Below are positions 24,147-29,716 of a DNA stretch of 64,000 nt, piece by piece. The number at the start of each line of letters is the position of its first letter. The stretch's first letter is position 1. The DNA comes from Macrostomum lignano (Eukaryota): assembly GCA_002269645.1 (NCBI GenBank), contig NIVC01000031.1, positions 372,001 to 436,000 on the forward strand, written 5' to 3'. A program made the translations under genes and the position numbers. The notes under the pieces were generated by a model. It searched no databases and was not told the DNA's origin. It saw nothing but the letters and a program-made list of their open reading frames with translations.

Positions 24147-25024
24147 GCCTGCTTGGGCCAACGAGTCAGGACCTGTAGAGCATGGGAAGAGAGTGAACTG
24201 GAGTGGTTGTATGGGATAAAAAGCAGTGAGGATAAGACGAAAACGGGGTTTTTATAACCAATTTTCAGCAGCCAATAGGAAAGCGTCATGGAACTGTTTT
24301 TTCAGCGAACTGGATCACAAAGATGGGAAAACTATAGACATCCTATAGCCAATCCGTCTGCATTTTCATGTGTTGGTTAACATGTGGTTGGTAAGCAAAA
24401 CTCCAGCCAAAATTAGAATATTTATTATCTTTGTTCAACTTGTACTGTAGATGAATCTCAAACAAAGAACAAAACTGCTTCACTTTTGACGAGAATATCT
24501 TGCACTAAAACTGCTGAAACTAGTCATGAAGGTAAATTTTTTGACAAAACATGCAGTCAAGTTAGAATGAGCAAAGTGGCTTGGGAAACAGGAAAAACAA
24601 ATCAATACATGTATATTGAACTTACTCGCTGACAGGTGGACTTCAGACTTCGATTCACTTCGCGAAATCGTTGAGAAAAACTTTAGAACCACTTCAAAAA
24701 AGGCAAAAAAGCAGAAAATTCCAGACAGAGAGAGTCCTCCCGAGCACTCAGGAGGGGCACGCATACAATTTCGAAGTGGGCAATACTCCACGCAACAGAT
24801 TGCCTTAAGCGTTTGCTTAGTTTTAAAACAGAATGGACAGAGACTTAAAATAGAAAATGGGTTTTACAAAGAGCTTCATTCTTCATTGACTCTCTCGTCG
24901 GCTCAAAATCGTATGGATAGATAGATATGAAATAAAAAGGATGCAAACTGGTGTGAGATCCACTGTTATGAGTACACGTCATATCAATAACTCTAGATAG
25001 ATAGATAGATAGATAGATAGATAG

Positions 25025-28000
25025 ATAGATAGTAGATAGCGAGAAAGAGCGAGCGAAGCGAGCTCTTTCGAGCTTGCTTGCCGCAGCCAATCAAGCTGAA
25101 AGCACGCACACAAGATCACCGGAAACGATTAAGGCAGCTGGAAAGCCAATGGGCGCGGTAAGCGCTTTTATCCAGAGGAACTACCTGCTGGAACCAGCCA
25201 TGCCGAACGAAAATCAGACTACTCAAGTAGTGCAAAAGAGTACGTGCAACTACCGAGAAATCTAATTTTCGTAACCGCTCCGGTGCAGGTCCTGGCTATA
25301 GATAGTAGATAGCGAGAAAGAGCGAGCGAAGCGAGCTCTTTCGAGCTTGCTTGCCGCAGCCAATCAAGCTGAAAGCACGCACACAAGATCACCGGAAACG
25401 ATTAAGGCAGCTGGAAAGCCAATGGGCGCGGTAAGCGCTTTTATCCAGAGGAACTACCTGCTGGAACCAGCCATGCCGAACGAAAATCAGACTACTCAAG
25501 TAGTGCAAAAGAGTACGTGCAACTACCGAGAAATCTAATTTTCGTAACCGCTCCGGTGCAGGTCCTGGCTATAGATAGTAGATAGCGAGAAAGAGCGAGC
25601 GAAGCGAGCTCTTTCGAGCTTGCTTGCCGCAGCCAATCAAGCTGAAAGCACGCACACAAGATCACCGGAAACGATTAAGGCAGCTGGAAAGCCAATGGGC
25701 GCGGTAAGCGCTTTTATCCAGAGGAACTACCTGCTGGAACCAGCCATGCCGAACGAAAATCAGACTACTCAAGTAGTGCAAAAGAGTACGTGCAACTACC
25801 GAGAAATCTAATTTTCGTAACCGCTCCGGTGCAGGTCCTGGCTATAGATAGTAGATAGCGAGAAAGAGCGAGCGAAGCGAGCTCTTTCGAGCTTGCTTGC
25901 CGCAGCCAATCAAGCTGAAAGCACGCACACAAGATCACCGGAAACGATTAAGGCAGCTGGAAAGCCAATGGGCGCGGTAAGCGCTTTTATCCAGAGGAAC
26001 TACCTGCTGGAACCAGCCATGCCGAACGAAAATCAGACTACTCAAGTAGTGCAAAAGAGTACGTGCAACTACCGAGAAATCTAATTTTCGTAACCGCTCC
26101 GGTGCAGGTCCTGGCTATAGATAGTAGATAGCGAGAAAGAGCGAGCGAAGCGAGCTCTTTCGAGCTTGCTTGCCGCAGCCAATCAAGCTGAAAGCACGCA
26201 CACAAGATCACCGGAAACGATTAAGGCAGCTGGAAAGCCAATGGGCGCGGTAAGCGCTTTTATCCAGAGGAACTACCTGCTGGAACCAGCCATGCCGAAC
26301 GAAAATCAGACTACTCAAGTAGTGCAAAAGAGTACGTGCAACTACCGAGAAATCTAATTTTCGTAACCGCTCCGGTGCAGGTCCTGGCTATAGATAGTAG
26401 ATAGCGAGAAAGAGCGAGCGAAGCGAGCTCTTTCGAGCTTGCTTGCCGCAGCCAATCAAGCTGAAAGCACGCACACAAGATCACCGGAAACGATTAAGGC
26501 AGCTGGAAAGCCAATGGGCGCGGTAAGCGCTTTTATCCAGAGGAACTACCTGCTGGAACCAGCCATGCCGAACGAAAATCAGACTACTCAAGTAGTGCAA
26601 AAGAGTACGTGCAACTACCGAGAAATCTAATTTTCGTAACCGCTCCGGTGCAGGTCCTGGCTATAGATAGTAGATAGCGAGAAAGAGCGAGCGAAGCGAG
26701 CTCTTTCGAGCTTGCTTGCCGCAGCCAATCAAGCTGAAAGCACGCACACAAGATCACCGGAAACGATTAAGGCAGCTGGAAAGCCAATGGGCGCGGTAAG
26801 CGCTTTTATCCAGAGGAACTACCTGCTGGAACCAGCCATGCCGAACGAAAATCAGACTACTCAAGTAGTGCAAAAGAGTACGTGCAACTACCGAGAAATC
26901 TAATTTTCGTAACCGCTCCGGTGCAGGTCCTGGCTATAGATAGTAGATAGCGAGAAAGAGCGAGCGAAGCGAGCTCTTTCGAGCTTGCTTGCCGCAGCCA
27001 ATCAAGCTGAAAGCACGCACACAAGATCACCGGAAACGATTAAGGCAGCTGGAAAGCCAATGGGCGCGGTAAGCGCTTTTATCCAGAGGAACTACCTGCT
27101 GGAACCAGCCATGCCGAACGAAAATCAGACTACTCAAGTAGTGCAAAAGAGTACGTGCAACTACCGAGAAATCTAATTTTCGTAACCGCTCCGGTGCAGG
27201 TCCTGGCTATAGATAGTAGATAGCGAGAAAGAGCGAGCGAAGCGAGCTCTTTCGAGCTTGCTTGCCGCAGCCAATCAAGCTGAAAGCACGCACACAAGAT
27301 CACCGGAAACGATTAAGGCAGCTGGAAAGCCAATGGGCGCGGTAAGCGCTTTTATCCAGAGGAACTACCTGCTGGAACCAGCCATGCCGAACGAAAATCA
27401 GACTACTCAAGTAGTGCAAAAGAGTACGTGCAACTACCGAGAAATCTAATTTTCGTAACCGCTCCGGTGCAGGTCCTGGCTATAGATAGTAGATAGCGAG
27501 AAAGAGCGAGCGAAGCGAGCTCTTTCGAGCTTGCTTGCCGCAGCCAATCAAGCTGAAAGCACGCACACAAGATCACCGGAAACGATTAAGGCAGCTGGAA
27601 AGCCAATGGGCGCGGTAAGCGCTTTTATCCAGAGGAACTACCTGCTGGAACCAGCCATGCCGAACGAAAATCAGACTACTCAAGTAGTGCAAAAGAGTAC
27701 GTGCAACTACCGAGAAATCTAATTTTCGTAACCGCTCCGGTGCAGGTCCTGGCTATAGATAGTAGATAGCGAGAAAGAGCGAGCGAAGCGAGCTCTTTCG
27801 AGCTTGCTTGCCGCAGCCAATCAAGCTGAAAGCACGCACACAAGATCACCGGAAACGATTAAGGCAGCTGGAAAGCCAATGGGCGCGGTAAGCGCTTTTA
27901 TCCAGAGGAACTACCTGCTGGAACCAGCCATGCCGAACGAAAATCAGACTACTCAAGTAGTGCAAAAGAGTACGTGCAACTACCGAGAAATCTAATTTTC

Positions 28001-28439
28001 GTAACCGCTCCGGTGCAGGTCCTGGCTATAGATAGTAGATAGCGAGAAAGAGCGAGCGAAGCGAGCTCTTTCGAGCTTGCTTGCCGCAGCCAATCAAGCT
28101 GAAAGCACGCACACAAGATCACCGGAAACGATTAAGGCAGCTGGAAAGCCAATGGGCGCGGTAAGCGCTTTTATCCAGAGGAACTACCTGCTGGAACCAG
28201 CCATGCCGAACGAAAATCAGACTACTCAAGTAGTGCAAAAGAGTACGTGCAACTACCGAGAAATCTAATTTTCGTAACCGCTCCGGTGCAGGTCCTGGCT
28301 ATAGATAGTAGATAGCGAGAAAGAGCGAGCGAAGCGAGCTCTTTCGAGCTTGCTTGCCGCAGCCAATCAAGCTGAAAGCACGCACACAAGATCACCGGAA
28401 ACGATTAAGGCAGCTGGAAAGCCAATGGGCGCGGTAAGC
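25025..28439. repeat. Tandem array of 12 full and one partial (139 bp) apparently identical 273-bp units
   Basis: Identical 63-aa ORFs spaced exactly 273 bp (25074...28077); I saw no unit differences by eye; flanked by a duplicated segment at 24961 and 28461. Confidence 0.98.
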
Positions 28440-28494
28440 TGTTATACTCACTGTTGTACTCACTGTTATGAGTACACGTCATATCAATAACTCT

Positions 28495-29716
28495 AGATAG
28501 ATAGATAGATAGATAGATAGATAGATAGATAGATAGATAGATAGATAGATAGATAGATAGATAGATAGATAGATAGATAGATAGATAGATAGATAGATAG
28601 ATAGATAGATAGATAGATAGATAGATAGATAGATAGATAGATAGATAGATAAATAGATAGATAGATAGATAGATAGATAGATAGATAGATAGATAGATAG
28701 ATAGATAGATAGATAGATAGATAGATAGATAGATAGATAGATAGATAGATAGATAAATAGATAGATAGATAGATAGATAGATAGATAGATAGATAGATAG
28801 ATAGATAGATAGATAGATAGATAGATAGATAGATAGATAGATAGATAGATAGATAGATAGATAGATAGATAGATAGATAGATAGATAGATAGATAGATAG
28901 ATAGATAGATAGATAGATAGATAGATAGATAGATAGATAGATAGATAGATAGATAGATAGATAGATAGATAGATAGATAGATAGATAGATAGATAGATAG
29001 ATAGATAGATAGATAGATAGATAGATAGATAGATAGATAGATAGATAGATAGATAGATAGATAGATAGATAGATAGATAGATAGATAGATAGATAGATAG
29101 ATAGATAGATAGATAGATAGATAGATAGATAGATAGATAGATAGATAGATAGATAGATAGATAGATAGATAGATAGATAGATAGATAGATAGATAAATAG
29201 ATAGATAGATAGATAGATAGATAGATAGATAGATAGATAGATAGATAGATAGATAGATAGATAGATAGATAGATAGATAGATAGATAGATAGATAGATAA
29301 ATAGATAGATAGATAGATAGATAGATAGATAGATAGATAGATAGATAGATAGATAGATAGATAGATAGATAGATAGATAGATAGATAGATAGATAGATAG
29401 ATAGATAGATAGATAGATAGATAAATAGATAGATAGATAGATAGATAGATAGAGATAGATAAATAGATAGATAGATAGATAGATAGATAGATAGATAGAT
29501 AGATAGATAGATAGATAGATAGATAGATAGATAGATAGATAGATAGATAGATAGATAGATAGATAGATAGATACATACATACATACATACATACATACAT
29601 ACATAAATACATACATACATACATACATTACATACATTACAGACATACATACATACATACATACATACATACATACATACATACATTACATACATTACAG
29701 ACATACATACACACAT
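28495..29716. repeat. (GATA)n (~1075 bp) followed by a (TACA)n microsatellite
   Basis: Direct. Confidence 0.98.

Follow-up and report, generated by a model that had tools for sequence, protein, structure and literature searches.

Microsatellite-specific non-LTR elements insert by target-primed reverse transcription, in which the 3' end of a simple-repeat target pairs with a complementary repeat in the template. Insertions of the Rsp-like satellite in Drosophila carry a 7-bp microhomology at one junction and have a variable second junction; four clusters show a 32-bp flank duplication that includes the microhomology, and the proposed origin involves abundant eccDNA and MMEJ/MMBIR (PMC7403614). 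Animal non-LTR retrozymes are tandem 150-450-bp repeats with type I hammerheads that are expressed as circRNAs, and the published limits for their GC content are <45% and <50% (PMC7229834). They have been linked to Penelope-like elements (bioRxiv 10.64898/2026.07.22.740005). Insertions templated from the flank in both orientations are described for Pol theta and SD-MMEJ (PMC4912351, PMC5068794, PMC2943611), and Helentron elements, which make no target duplication, differ between their left and right flanks and carry subterminal inverted repeats as well as a 3' palindrome (PMC7492417). The genomes of Macrostomum consist to 15% of simple and tandem repeats, and DNA injected into these worms integrates as tandems (PMC5730564).

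Here we describe an array of perfect head-to-tail 273-bp copies in a GATA microsatellite of the flatworm Macrostomum, located in a 64-kb stretch of DNA that was analysed as a whole (the window). The insertion is very young. With the microsatellite-specific non-LTR elements it shares the pairing of a repeat 3' end with the template, a target duplication and a truncated distal end, whereas a 3' tail, an ORF and a known partner element are lacking, and its template is repeated 12.5 times. As in the Rsp-like insertions into 1.688 arrays (Drosophila simulans/mauritiana, PMC7403614), a new array lies inside an existing repeat with several nucleotides of microhomology at one junction, the second junction is irregular, no element-encoded machinery is present and, as in some of the Rsp-like cases, tens of flanking base pairs are duplicated with the microhomology included. 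Unlike in Drosophila, the insertion went into a tetranucleotide microsatellite, no unit differs from another, the junctions are undecayed and the second of them can be decoded in full as a templated filler, and a single locus is known. The monomer length, head-to-tail multimers, target duplication of more than a few base pairs, self-paired predicted RNA and proposed rolling-circle copy recall the retrozymes, but the unit is CpG-rich, has a GC content of 50.5% and lacks a known ribozyme. Scars of Pol theta and SD-MMEJ (PMC4912351, PMC5068794, PMC2943611, PMC5728401) resemble the right junction in the short pieces copied, directly or inverted, from sequence no more than ~20 nt away from the break, in the joining of these pieces by 1-3-nt microhomologies and in repeated abortive attempts; however, they usually come with small deletions or insertions, whereas the scar here seals a 3.4-kb concatemer and goes together with a 64-72-nt duplication. 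The circRNA-derived pseudogenes (PMC4897178) are likewise genomic copies that cross the junction of a circular template and have no poly(A), but each of them is a single dispersed copy that has one back-splice junction and whose parent gene is known, in contrast to 12.5 laps and no known parent here. Short arrays of 100-300-bp monomers beside a tetranucleotide microsatellite are also borne by Helentrons (Cg_HINE, pearl; PMC7492417), but their conserved flanks, subterminal inverted repeats, 3' palindrome, diverged monomers and lack of a target duplication have no counterpart here.

The array and its junctions

Tandem Repeats Finder (TRF) reported the segment 25025-28439 with a period of 273, 12.5 copies, 100% matches, 0% indels and a score of 6830, whereas all other arrays in the window were 71-99% self-identical. 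Direct unit-by-unit comparison gave 0 mismatches in each of the 12 full units; the 13th is identical as far as offset 139, and a mismatch first appears at 28440. The unit has a GC content of 50.5% vs 42% for the window and a CpG observed/expected ratio of 1.09 vs 0.70. Neither coding potential nor a protein homologue was found for the 273-bp unit, no second copy of it occurs elsewhere in the 64-kb window, it matched no plasmids or phages, and the one 29-mer tested was absent from prokaryote genomes. The last unit ends at the centre of AAGC/GCTT; of the 273 positions in the unit, this is the only one with an 8-nt palindrome. The coordinates of all features are given in Table 1.

Table 1. Features of the array, its target site and its surroundings (positions in the window; a dot marks features without strand)
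Feature	Position	Strand	Evidence
Unique 35-nt target segment, left-hand copy; opens the 72-nt duplication	24961..24995	.	exact 35-mer match
Left (GATA)9.25 tract, second part of the duplicated target	24996..25032	.	flank-copy identity ends 25032/28532
GATA-like patch ATAGATAGTAGATAG, present in every unit; proposed primer-annealing site	25025..25039	+	
Complete 273-bp units, n=12, all identical	25025..28300	+	TRF 100% matches; 0 mismatches per unit
Hairpin GAAAGAGC...GCTCTTTC, perfect 8-bp stem (unit 1 position)	25043..25069	+	
CCAAT motifs, n=2, at 25087 and 25146 of unit 1	25087..25152	+	CpG-rich unit
Palindrome AAGCGCTT (unit 1 position); its centre is the copying end in the last unit	25160..25167	.	
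Imperfect 64-nt hairpin, about 27 bp (unit 1 position)	25208..25271	-	
13th unit, 139 nt, cut at the centre of palindrome AAGC/GCTT	28301..28439	+	first mismatch at offset 139
21-nt filler TGTTATACTCACTGTTGTACT, templated both directly and inverted by the right flank's first ~16-20 nt	28440..28460	.	
Duplicated 72-nt target, right-hand copy (35-nt segment and 37 nt GATA)	28461..28532	.	
(GATA/TAGA)~283 microsatellite, rest of the target tract	28494..29625	.	TRF period 4, 283.5 copies, 98% matches
Exon 1, TRH-receptor-like GPCR gene	23355..24146	-	Pfam 7tm_1 3.4e-36
Exon 2, TRH-receptor-like GPCR gene	16303-16503		tblastn and Pfam

Exactly two copies of the 35-mer CACTGTTATGAGTACACGTCATATCAATAACTCTA, at 24961 and 28461, are present in the window, where blastn-short found no further related ones. 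The identity of the flanks covers 72 nt in all and does not extend leftward. At the left junction, which is seamless, the opening 15 nt of every unit continue the (GATA)9.25 tract, and the last 8 nt of the tract are at the same time the first 8 of unit 1 (microhomology ATAGATAG, 25025-25032). Since the duplication measures 72 nt, the effective target duplication is 64-72 nt. Both junction microhomology and insertion into a pre-existing repeat, (GATA)n, are present as in the Rsp-like insertions, and the empty site is read as the 35-nt segment followed by (GATA)n. The perfect identity of the 12.5 units and of the 72-nt duplication implies one recent event and one monomer-length template, and the non-integer number of units, together with a unit phase set by the GATA patch, fits priming on the patch and arbitrary termination.

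The filler at the right junction can be tiled by four pieces, TGTTA/TACT/CACTGT/TGTACT, taken from CACTGTTATGAGTACACGTC and its reverse complement, and only 1 of 20,000 shuffled fillers needed four pieces or fewer (p about 5e-5). Its 21 nt are templated near the break in both orientations, as in SD-MMEJ scars, and the filler is a probable signature of templated end joining of the polymerase-theta type. End-joining and snap-back activities of a similar kind are reported for reverse transcriptases (bioRxiv 10.1101/2022.03.14.484287).

An earlier note on this DNA had described the 35-nt segment and GATA as occurring twice, a GATA-like patch continuous with the left microsatellite, 12 full units and a 139-bp partial one, all apparently identical, and two 12-nt pseudo-copies of the target edge (CTGTTATACTCA, CTGTTGTACTCA). 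Our analysis bears out these observations and refines three of them: the repeated segment belongs to the 72-nt duplication; the pseudo-copies lie at 28439-28462, but the true filler there is the 21 nt of 28440-28460, for which both strands of the adjoining flank served as template; and the partial unit ends at the centre of the palindrome.

The array starts ~0.9 kb upstream of the start of the TRH-receptor-like GPCR gene, the exon product of which is 89-92% identical to a Macrostomum lignano protein. The second CCAAT (unit offset 122-128) falls within the partial unit, so that the 13 units contribute 26 CCAAT motifs upstream of this gene; a promoter role for them is only what we infer. No reverse transcriptase (RT) or endonuclease domain was detected in the window's open frames of at least 75 aa outside the arrays, although an enzyme acting in trans may be encoded elsewhere. 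A tRNA-derived SINE-like repeat is present in the window.

Folding of the unit and the search for ribozymes

The circular fold predicted for the minus strand has an MFE of -98.2 kcal/mol (z = -4.7) and that for the plus strand -86.2 (z = -3.5), compared with a mean z of -0.48 (SD 1.06, minimum -3.07) in 54 control segments of the window. Eight G.U pairs are predicted on the minus strand and two on the plus strand. The better fold is that of the minus strand, which would have served as template. The strong hairpins claimed earlier for the unit are present; the 64-nt hairpin contains 4 transition mismatches, all of which become G.U pairs on minus-strand RNA, and it is nested within a long-range pairing of 25117-25130 with 25272-25285. 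In the predicted minus-strand circle the GATA-like patch is mostly unpaired (P(paired) 0.32 vs a mean of 0.67).

The absence of a hammerhead core was confirmed, as CUGANGA occurs on neither strand. The ribozyme check with Rfam was also empty: Rfam 15 gave 0 matches in the whole window at the gathering score, and 0 matches at E<=10 in 24900-25900, a segment that covers every permutation of the unit. Retrozyme monomers each carry a type I hammerhead, which this unit does not. Its 273 bp x 12.5 lies within the head-to-tail 150-450-bp repeats, ranging from dimeric up to large multimeric forms, of that group, its monomer RNA is predicted to be highly self-paired, and its 64-72-nt duplication exceeds the >4 bp of retrozyme target duplications when these are present; its GC content of 50.5% is not low, being at or just above the published limits. 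Membership of the animal non-LTR retrozymes was rejected on their defining feature, since neither a hammerhead nor another known ribozyme was found.

Origin of the insertion

We consider it quite probable that the locus arose through an insertion with microhomology priming, multi-lap copying and templated end joining. The template, as read from the array, was small, repeating and probably circular, and DNA and RNA templates give indistinguishable junctions here. The reading that we tentatively prefer, with somewhat less than even confidence, is that the array was inserted once and very recently during break repair, with a small DNA circle (eccDNA/microDNA) of one 273-bp unit as its template. 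The site would have opened with two overlapping 3' tails, either via opposite-strand nicks about 70 nt apart or where a fork had collapsed in the GATA tract. On the top strand, the 3' end ...(GATA)9G would anneal to the GATA-complementary patch of the 273-nt circle, and a strand-displacing, reasonably accurate polymerase would then extend it round the circle for 12.5 laps; the 0 errors in about 3.1 kb of re-copied sequence imply an error rate below about 1e-3 per nt. The nascent strand would be released at the AAGC/GCTT palindrome, and the opposite 3' end would several times be extended abortively from microhomologies, by snap-back or in trans, which is a signature of Pol theta / SD-MMEJ, after which the ends would be joined and the gaps filled, with the fill-in duplicating the target. 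The circle would most likely have been born at another genomic site, from a segment rich in CpG and with GATA-like repeats at its borders, and captured at a GATA break because it carries the GATA patch.

In favour of a DNA circle, the unit is non-coding and richer in GC and CpG than its surroundings, no ribozyme was found, and the window's open frames (at least 75 aa, outside the arrays) encode no RT or endonuclease. The Rsp-like insertions of Drosophila, in which satellites spread at the DNA level, have a closely similar architecture (PMC7403614), and the filler templated by the flank and the tandem integration of injected DNA in Macrostomum (PMC5730564) also count in its favour. The 273 bp of the unit fall within the microDNA range. 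To our knowledge, rolling-circle DNA synthesis on circles of such a size is known only from yeast telomere-circle experiments and not from animal germlines. The folding also speaks against it: the z of the unit lies outside the control range, whereas a random genomic circle is not expected to be so structured, the better fold is on the would-be template strand, and the four G.U pairs of the long hairpin form only there.

These same properties are what a structured 273-nt minus-strand circular RNA, reverse-transcribed in trans by a LINE or Penelope-type RT, would lead one to expect, and we regard such an origin as possible but rather doubtful. The circle could come from a viroid-like or retrozyme-like non-autonomous retroelement or from a back-spliced exon; a GATA strand, nicked and annealed to the unpaired CUAUCUACUAUCUAU patch, would prime 12.5 laps, and the far end would be formed by host microhomology-mediated joining or by RT template jumping. 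The z of -4.7, beyond the background range, is found on exactly the template strand required, with 8 G.U pairs on the minus strand vs 2 on the plus, and the primer-binding patch is accessible in the prediction. The published traits of animal non-LTR retrozymes include this monomer size, a head-to-tail tandem, a target duplication of >4 bp and strong self-pairing (PMC7229834), the genomic copying of RNA circles has a precedent in circRNA-derived pseudogenes (PMC4897178), the SINE-like tRNA-derived repeat in the window indicates that retroposition operates in the lineage, and the end at the palindrome centre could be a processing site. However, the hammerhead core and Rfam ribozymes of any class are absent even at E<=10, the GC content of 50.5% and CpG ratio of 1.09 are unlike those of the low-GC retrozymes, and there is neither a second copy in 64 kb nor an RT in the window. 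The 4:0 G.U asymmetry of the long hairpin reaches only p about 0.12 (two-sided), and the fold comes from a single sequence, which allows no covariation test. The earlier note had proposed that a nicked GATA strand primed the copying of a circle for 12.5 laps by retroposition. A single insertion, a long target duplication, priming by a GATA 3' end through complementarity to the patch, more than 12 laps, a truncated unit and short template jumps all hold, but the sequence gives no sign of an RNA template or RT. The same junctions and filler are expected if a small DNA circle is copied in host break repair (Pol theta / SD-MMEJ, MMBIR). Repair copying of a small DNA circle fits slightly better than an RNA template. 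We think it improbable, if worth stating, that the locus represents an undescribed class of flatworm viroid-like circular RNA retroelements, ribozyme-less or with a new ribozyme, which would home to (GATA)n through an exposed 15-nt GATA-complementary patch pairing with the nicked target strand and be written in as rolling-circle cDNA, with AAGC/GCUU as the processing site.

Another reading is that a linear piece of an existing array was captured, either a ~3.4-kb fragment of an established 273-bp satellite elsewhere (as DNA, or as a long multimeric transcript copied to its 5' end) or ~1.5 units that were later expanded on the spot through unequal exchange. Tandem arrays abound in the genome (TRF of the window; PMC5730564), movement of satellite fragments between loci is documented (PMC7403614), the defined palindrome end could be that of a linear molecule, and identical units expanding in place leave no trace. 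Such a capture is nevertheless unlikely, as the donor array would have to be perfectly homogeneous, with 12.5 identical units against 71-99% in the window's other arrays, no other copy of the unit lies within 64 kb, and the insertion of more than one unit still requires a tandem or circular source. That the copy number or identity is unreal, through assembly, polishing or amplification, or that a chimeric read is involved, seems very unlikely. Consensus polishing can yield perfect identity and the unit count of a 3.4-kb perfect array hinges on spanning reads, but both flanks are the same locus with a precise 72-nt duplication, the junction is a complex and biologically typical templated filler, the other arrays of the window retain variation, and neither the plasmid and phage comparison nor the 29-mer search in prokaryote genomes gave a match. 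A further alternative raised in the earlier note, a non-autonomous Helitron/Helentron-type element (pearl, HINE-like) with a central tandem array and a microsatellite, we regard as scarcely credible and reject. The likeness is superficial, consisting of a central array beside a tetranucleotide microsatellite (PMC7492417), whereas the monomers are identical instead of 8-21% diverged, and the flanks are an exact, direct 72-nt target duplication and not distinct conserved ends with subterminal inverted repeats and a 3' palindrome. The inverted repeats linking 24162-24995 and 29700-30400 were only chance 7-10-mers.

Implications for the seeding of satellite arrays

The seeding of satellite arrays at new loci usually has to be reconstructed from copies that are old and decayed. 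At this locus all units, both junctions and the duplicated target are intact, so that the order of molecular steps is directly readable: priming by an 8-nt microhomology in a microsatellite, more than 12 laps on a monomer-length template, repeated abortive template switches, and sealing. Because Macrostomum is a laboratory model with RNAi and transgenesis, the choice between a DNA and an RNA circle and the identity of the polymerase are experimentally approachable. The array puts 26 CCAAT-containing, CpG-rich motifs ~0.9 kb upstream of a neuropeptide-receptor gene and may be a recent regulatory polymorphism.

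Structure of the array and its junctions

Tandem Repeats Finder resolved positions 25025-28439 into a single array with a period of 273 bp and 12.5 copies (matches 100%, indels none), and the unit-by-unit comparison revealed no mismatches to the first unit in any of the 12 full units. The thirteenth unit follows the first up to offset 139, and divergence begins at 28440. The sole occurrences of the target segment CACTGTTATGAGTACACGTCATATCAATAACTCTA (the 35-mer) in the window are at 24961 and 28461. All the sequence features described in the earlier note were found to be present and were corrected in extent alone: the flanking duplication is longer than described, since direct comparison of the two 35-mer copies showed agreement over 72 nt (35 nt plus 37 nt of GATA repeats, with leftward extension by 0 bases), and the extra sequence at the far junction, here called the filler, spans 21 nt. 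On the left side, (GATA)9.25 passes uninterrupted into the initial 15 nt of the unit, the GATA-like patch ATAGATAGTAGATAG, and because of this unbroken run the exact left junction can be placed anywhere in the common ATAGATAG (25025-25032). On the right side, the truncated unit (...GGCGCGGTAAGC) gives way to the filler TGTTATACTCACTGTTGTACT, after which come the second 35-mer and the (GATA)~283 tract. A short GGATAGATAGATATG patch at 24916-24928 precedes the duplicated 35-mer by 32 nt; GATA-like sequence therefore flanked the 35-mer on both sides before the insertion. The possibility that the 35-nt segment is the 3' end of a dispersed GATA-tailed element was rejected, as a third copy is absent from the window and the flank next to the other GATA-type array (21482-22321, inverted) is unrelated. 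An in-place origin from a unit with GATA on either side was also rejected as less parsimonious, because the right end of the array meets the duplicated 35-mer via the filler and not via GATA.

Judged from the sequence, the simplest history would be an insertion into the 35-mer-(GATA)n target. The 64-72-nt target duplication implies that both broken ends retained that stretch. In the geometry that we infer, the break would have exposed two overlapping 3' tails: the top-strand tail would have terminated in ...(GATA)9G-3', and the bottom-strand tail at the nucleotide complementary to base 1 of the 35-mer. The left tail would anneal to the template at the complement of ATAGATAG, and as extension of this tail would yield the array as written, the template would correspond to the minus-strand sequence. 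Given the identical units, the non-integer number of laps and the phase set by the patch, the most economical template is a circle one monomer long, copied in rolling-circle fashion. The zero differences over approximately 3.1 kb of re-copied sequence imply that the copying enzyme would have made fewer than about 1e-3 errors per nt.

The filler is non-random. It tiles as TGTTA / TACT / CACTGT / TGTACT, and each piece occurs within the initial 20 nt of the neighbouring 35-mer or in its reverse complement; only 1 of 20,000 shuffles could be tiled in as few pieces. Such a sequence could have arisen from three rounds of annealing of a 3' end to the start of the 35-mer, two of them followed by a jump to the opposite strand after 5-7 nt and the third by read-through. 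Iterated microhomology-primed direct and snap-back copying near the break is the signature of Pol theta and SD-MMEJ (PMC4912351, PMC5068794, PMC2943611, PMC5728401), and the filler shares this pattern of repeated direct and snap-back copies close to the break. In addition, the last unit ends (28439, unit offset 139) at the exact centre of AAGC|GCTT, which was spotted post hoc as the sole perfect 8-nt palindrome of the unit (1 of 273 positions). The stop at this site could be accidental, could mark a place where dissociation is preferred, or could coincide with the 5' terminus of a linear template that had been processed.

Genes and other repeats in the window

Protein-coding features of the window
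Feature	Position	Strand	Domain evidence
Rhodopsin-type GPCR open frame	23355-24146	minus	Pfam 7tm_1, 3.4e-36
Last exon of GPCR gene	16303-16503		
Deltex-like gene	41018-42762	minus	Deltex C-terminal domain 41018-41380, 1.8e-35; RING-like frame 41911-42762
CIP2A-like exon	53954-54658	plus	CIP2A N-terminal domain, 1.3e-09
C2H2 zinc-finger frame	63690-63998	plus	

The open frame of the GPCR gene is 89-92% identical to an M. lignano thyrotropin-releasing-hormone-receptor-like protein, the next best matches being likewise from M. lignano; these matches assign the window to a Macrostomum flatworm. The start of the array lies some 0.9 kb upstream of the GPCR gene. No homologue of the CIP2A-like exon was found at E ≤ 0.001 among 5.8 billion proteins, which suggests that the lineage is sparsely represented in protein databases; the introns near this exon are full of 18-30-bp minisatellites. 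The 5' side of the Deltex-like gene is adjoined by a 45-bp minisatellite of 74 copies (42721-46068), open in several frames (ORFs of ≤793 aa). Reverse transcriptase, endonuclease and clear transposase domains were absent from the open frames of at least 75 aa outside the arrays in the window. A weak DDE transposase match on the minus strand at 34807-35259 (DDE_Tnp_1_4, E = 0.0037, below the Pfam cut-off) may represent a decayed DNA-transposon remnant.

Mini- and microsatellites with a self-identity of 71-99% (Tandem Repeats Finder) crowd the window, in agreement with the 15% of simple and tandem repeats published for the M. lignano genome (PMC5730564). Two inverted microsatellite pairs were observed: (TGAC)43 at 19550-19721 with (GTCA)99 at 20322-20718, about 600 bp apart, and (ATCT)210 at 21482-22321 with (TAGA)283 at 28494-29625, about 6.2 kb apart. 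The latter pair encloses GPCR exon 1 and the 273-bp array, and the unique flanks of its two members are unrelated. Within the (GATA)283 tract (28494-29625), AATA variants occur at 28652/28756 and 29196/29300, spaced by exactly 104 bp in each pair, which suggests that this tract also expands via duplication of blocks of about 100 bp; a (CATA)n tract follows at 29626-29710. The nested repeats at 6272-7126 (345-bp x2, 143-148-bp units) are made of clusters of the 10-11-nt motifs GTCGATAAGG / ATCGATAAGG and look like an array of binding-site-like motifs. A dispersed repeat of about 220 bp is present in two copies (34280-34500 and 41577-41795, core identity about 92%) that enclose two minisatellite arrays, 36861-38547 and 39610-41015. 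Its minus strand resembles a tRNA-derived SINE head (TAGTGGTTAGAGC ... GGTTCGATTCTCG), and ARAGORN calls no tRNA in it.

Composition, predicted fold and database matches of the unit

The unit has a GC content of 50.5% and a CpG o/e of 1.09, compared with 42% and 0.70 in the window, and contains two CCAAT motifs and several nested inverted repeats. The predicted circular fold reached -98.2 kcal/mol (z = -4.7) for the minus strand and -86.2 kcal/mol (z = -3.5) for the plus strand. Among the 54 control segments of 273 nt, all drawn from non-repeat sequence of this window, the mean z was -0.48 (SD 1.06) and the lowest no deeper than -3.07. Since the unit lies beyond all 54 controls, the predicted structure is a genuine property of the unit. 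The predicted fold contains 8 G.U pairs on the minus strand versus 2 on the plus strand, and all four transition mismatches of a 64-nt hairpin (unit offsets 184-247) become G.U on the minus strand; for this hairpin alone the 4:0 asymmetry gives p of about 0.12 (two-sided), and the bias is therefore no more than a hint. The predicted fold leaves the GATA-like patch comparatively open (pairing probability 0.32 versus a mean of 0.67).

The hammerhead core that the earlier note had failed to find is indeed missing, the regex search detecting CUGANGA on neither strand of the unit. No ribozyme of another known family emerged either: Rfam yielded no family at gathering score in the entire window and no match even at E ≤ 10 in 1 kb of the array, which includes every circular permutation. 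ARAGORN detected no tRNA or tRNA-like gene in the unit, and the window holds no second copy of it. A vector, phage or prokaryote origin was rejected, since a blastn search with the unit dimer matched neither plasmids nor phages and since metagenome, prokaryote-genome and viral collections did not contain the tested exact 29- and 35-mers. A coding origin was rejected as well, because stop codons interrupt all six frames and the inter-stop segments have no homologue among 5.8 billion proteins, the M. lignano proteome included; the unit ORFs are also missing from a 15-billion-protein collection.

The source of the template

Target-primed reverse transcription and break repair on a DNA circle would leave the same junction geometry. 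We favour a DNA circle tentatively, at somewhat short of an even chance, because no ribozyme, reverse transcriptase or known element was found in the searches of the unit and the window, because the composition of the unit is GC/CpG-rich and promoter-like, and because its 273 bp fall within the size range of microDNA. Moreover, the architecture closely resembles the Rsp-like satellite insertions of Drosophila, in which one junction has 7 bp of microhomology and the other varies, the flank is duplicated over 32 bp in four clusters, and eccDNA is abundant (PMC7403614). The mechanism of the event resembles the seeding of satellites by circles and microhomology-mediated repair.

The outline of the event resembles a retrozyme insertion, and an RNA circle is a possible, if rather unlikely, source. 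It would be consistent with the exceptional predicted structure, strongest for the template strand, with the accessibility of the primer-binding patch in the predicted fold, and with the SINE-like repeat, which indicates that retroposition occurs in the lineage. The unit is also like animal retrozymes (PMC7229834), now tied to Penelope-like elements (bioRxiv 10.64898/2026.07.22.740005), in its length, its tandem arrangement, its self-pairing and the accompanying target duplication. The unit itself was rejected as a retrozyme, as the hammerhead that defines the family is absent. It appears improbable that a linear fragment of a pre-existing array was captured or that the array subsequently grew in place, and an artefact appears very improbable. 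The Helentron/pearl element listed among the alternatives in the earlier note deserves hardly any credence, because it is contradicted by the target duplication and by flanks that are not the ends of such an element.

The value of this locus lies in its preservation, which is unusual because each step left a legible trace. Its significance would be much greater if the monomer were a multi-copy, transcribed, circular RNA targeting GATA tracts.
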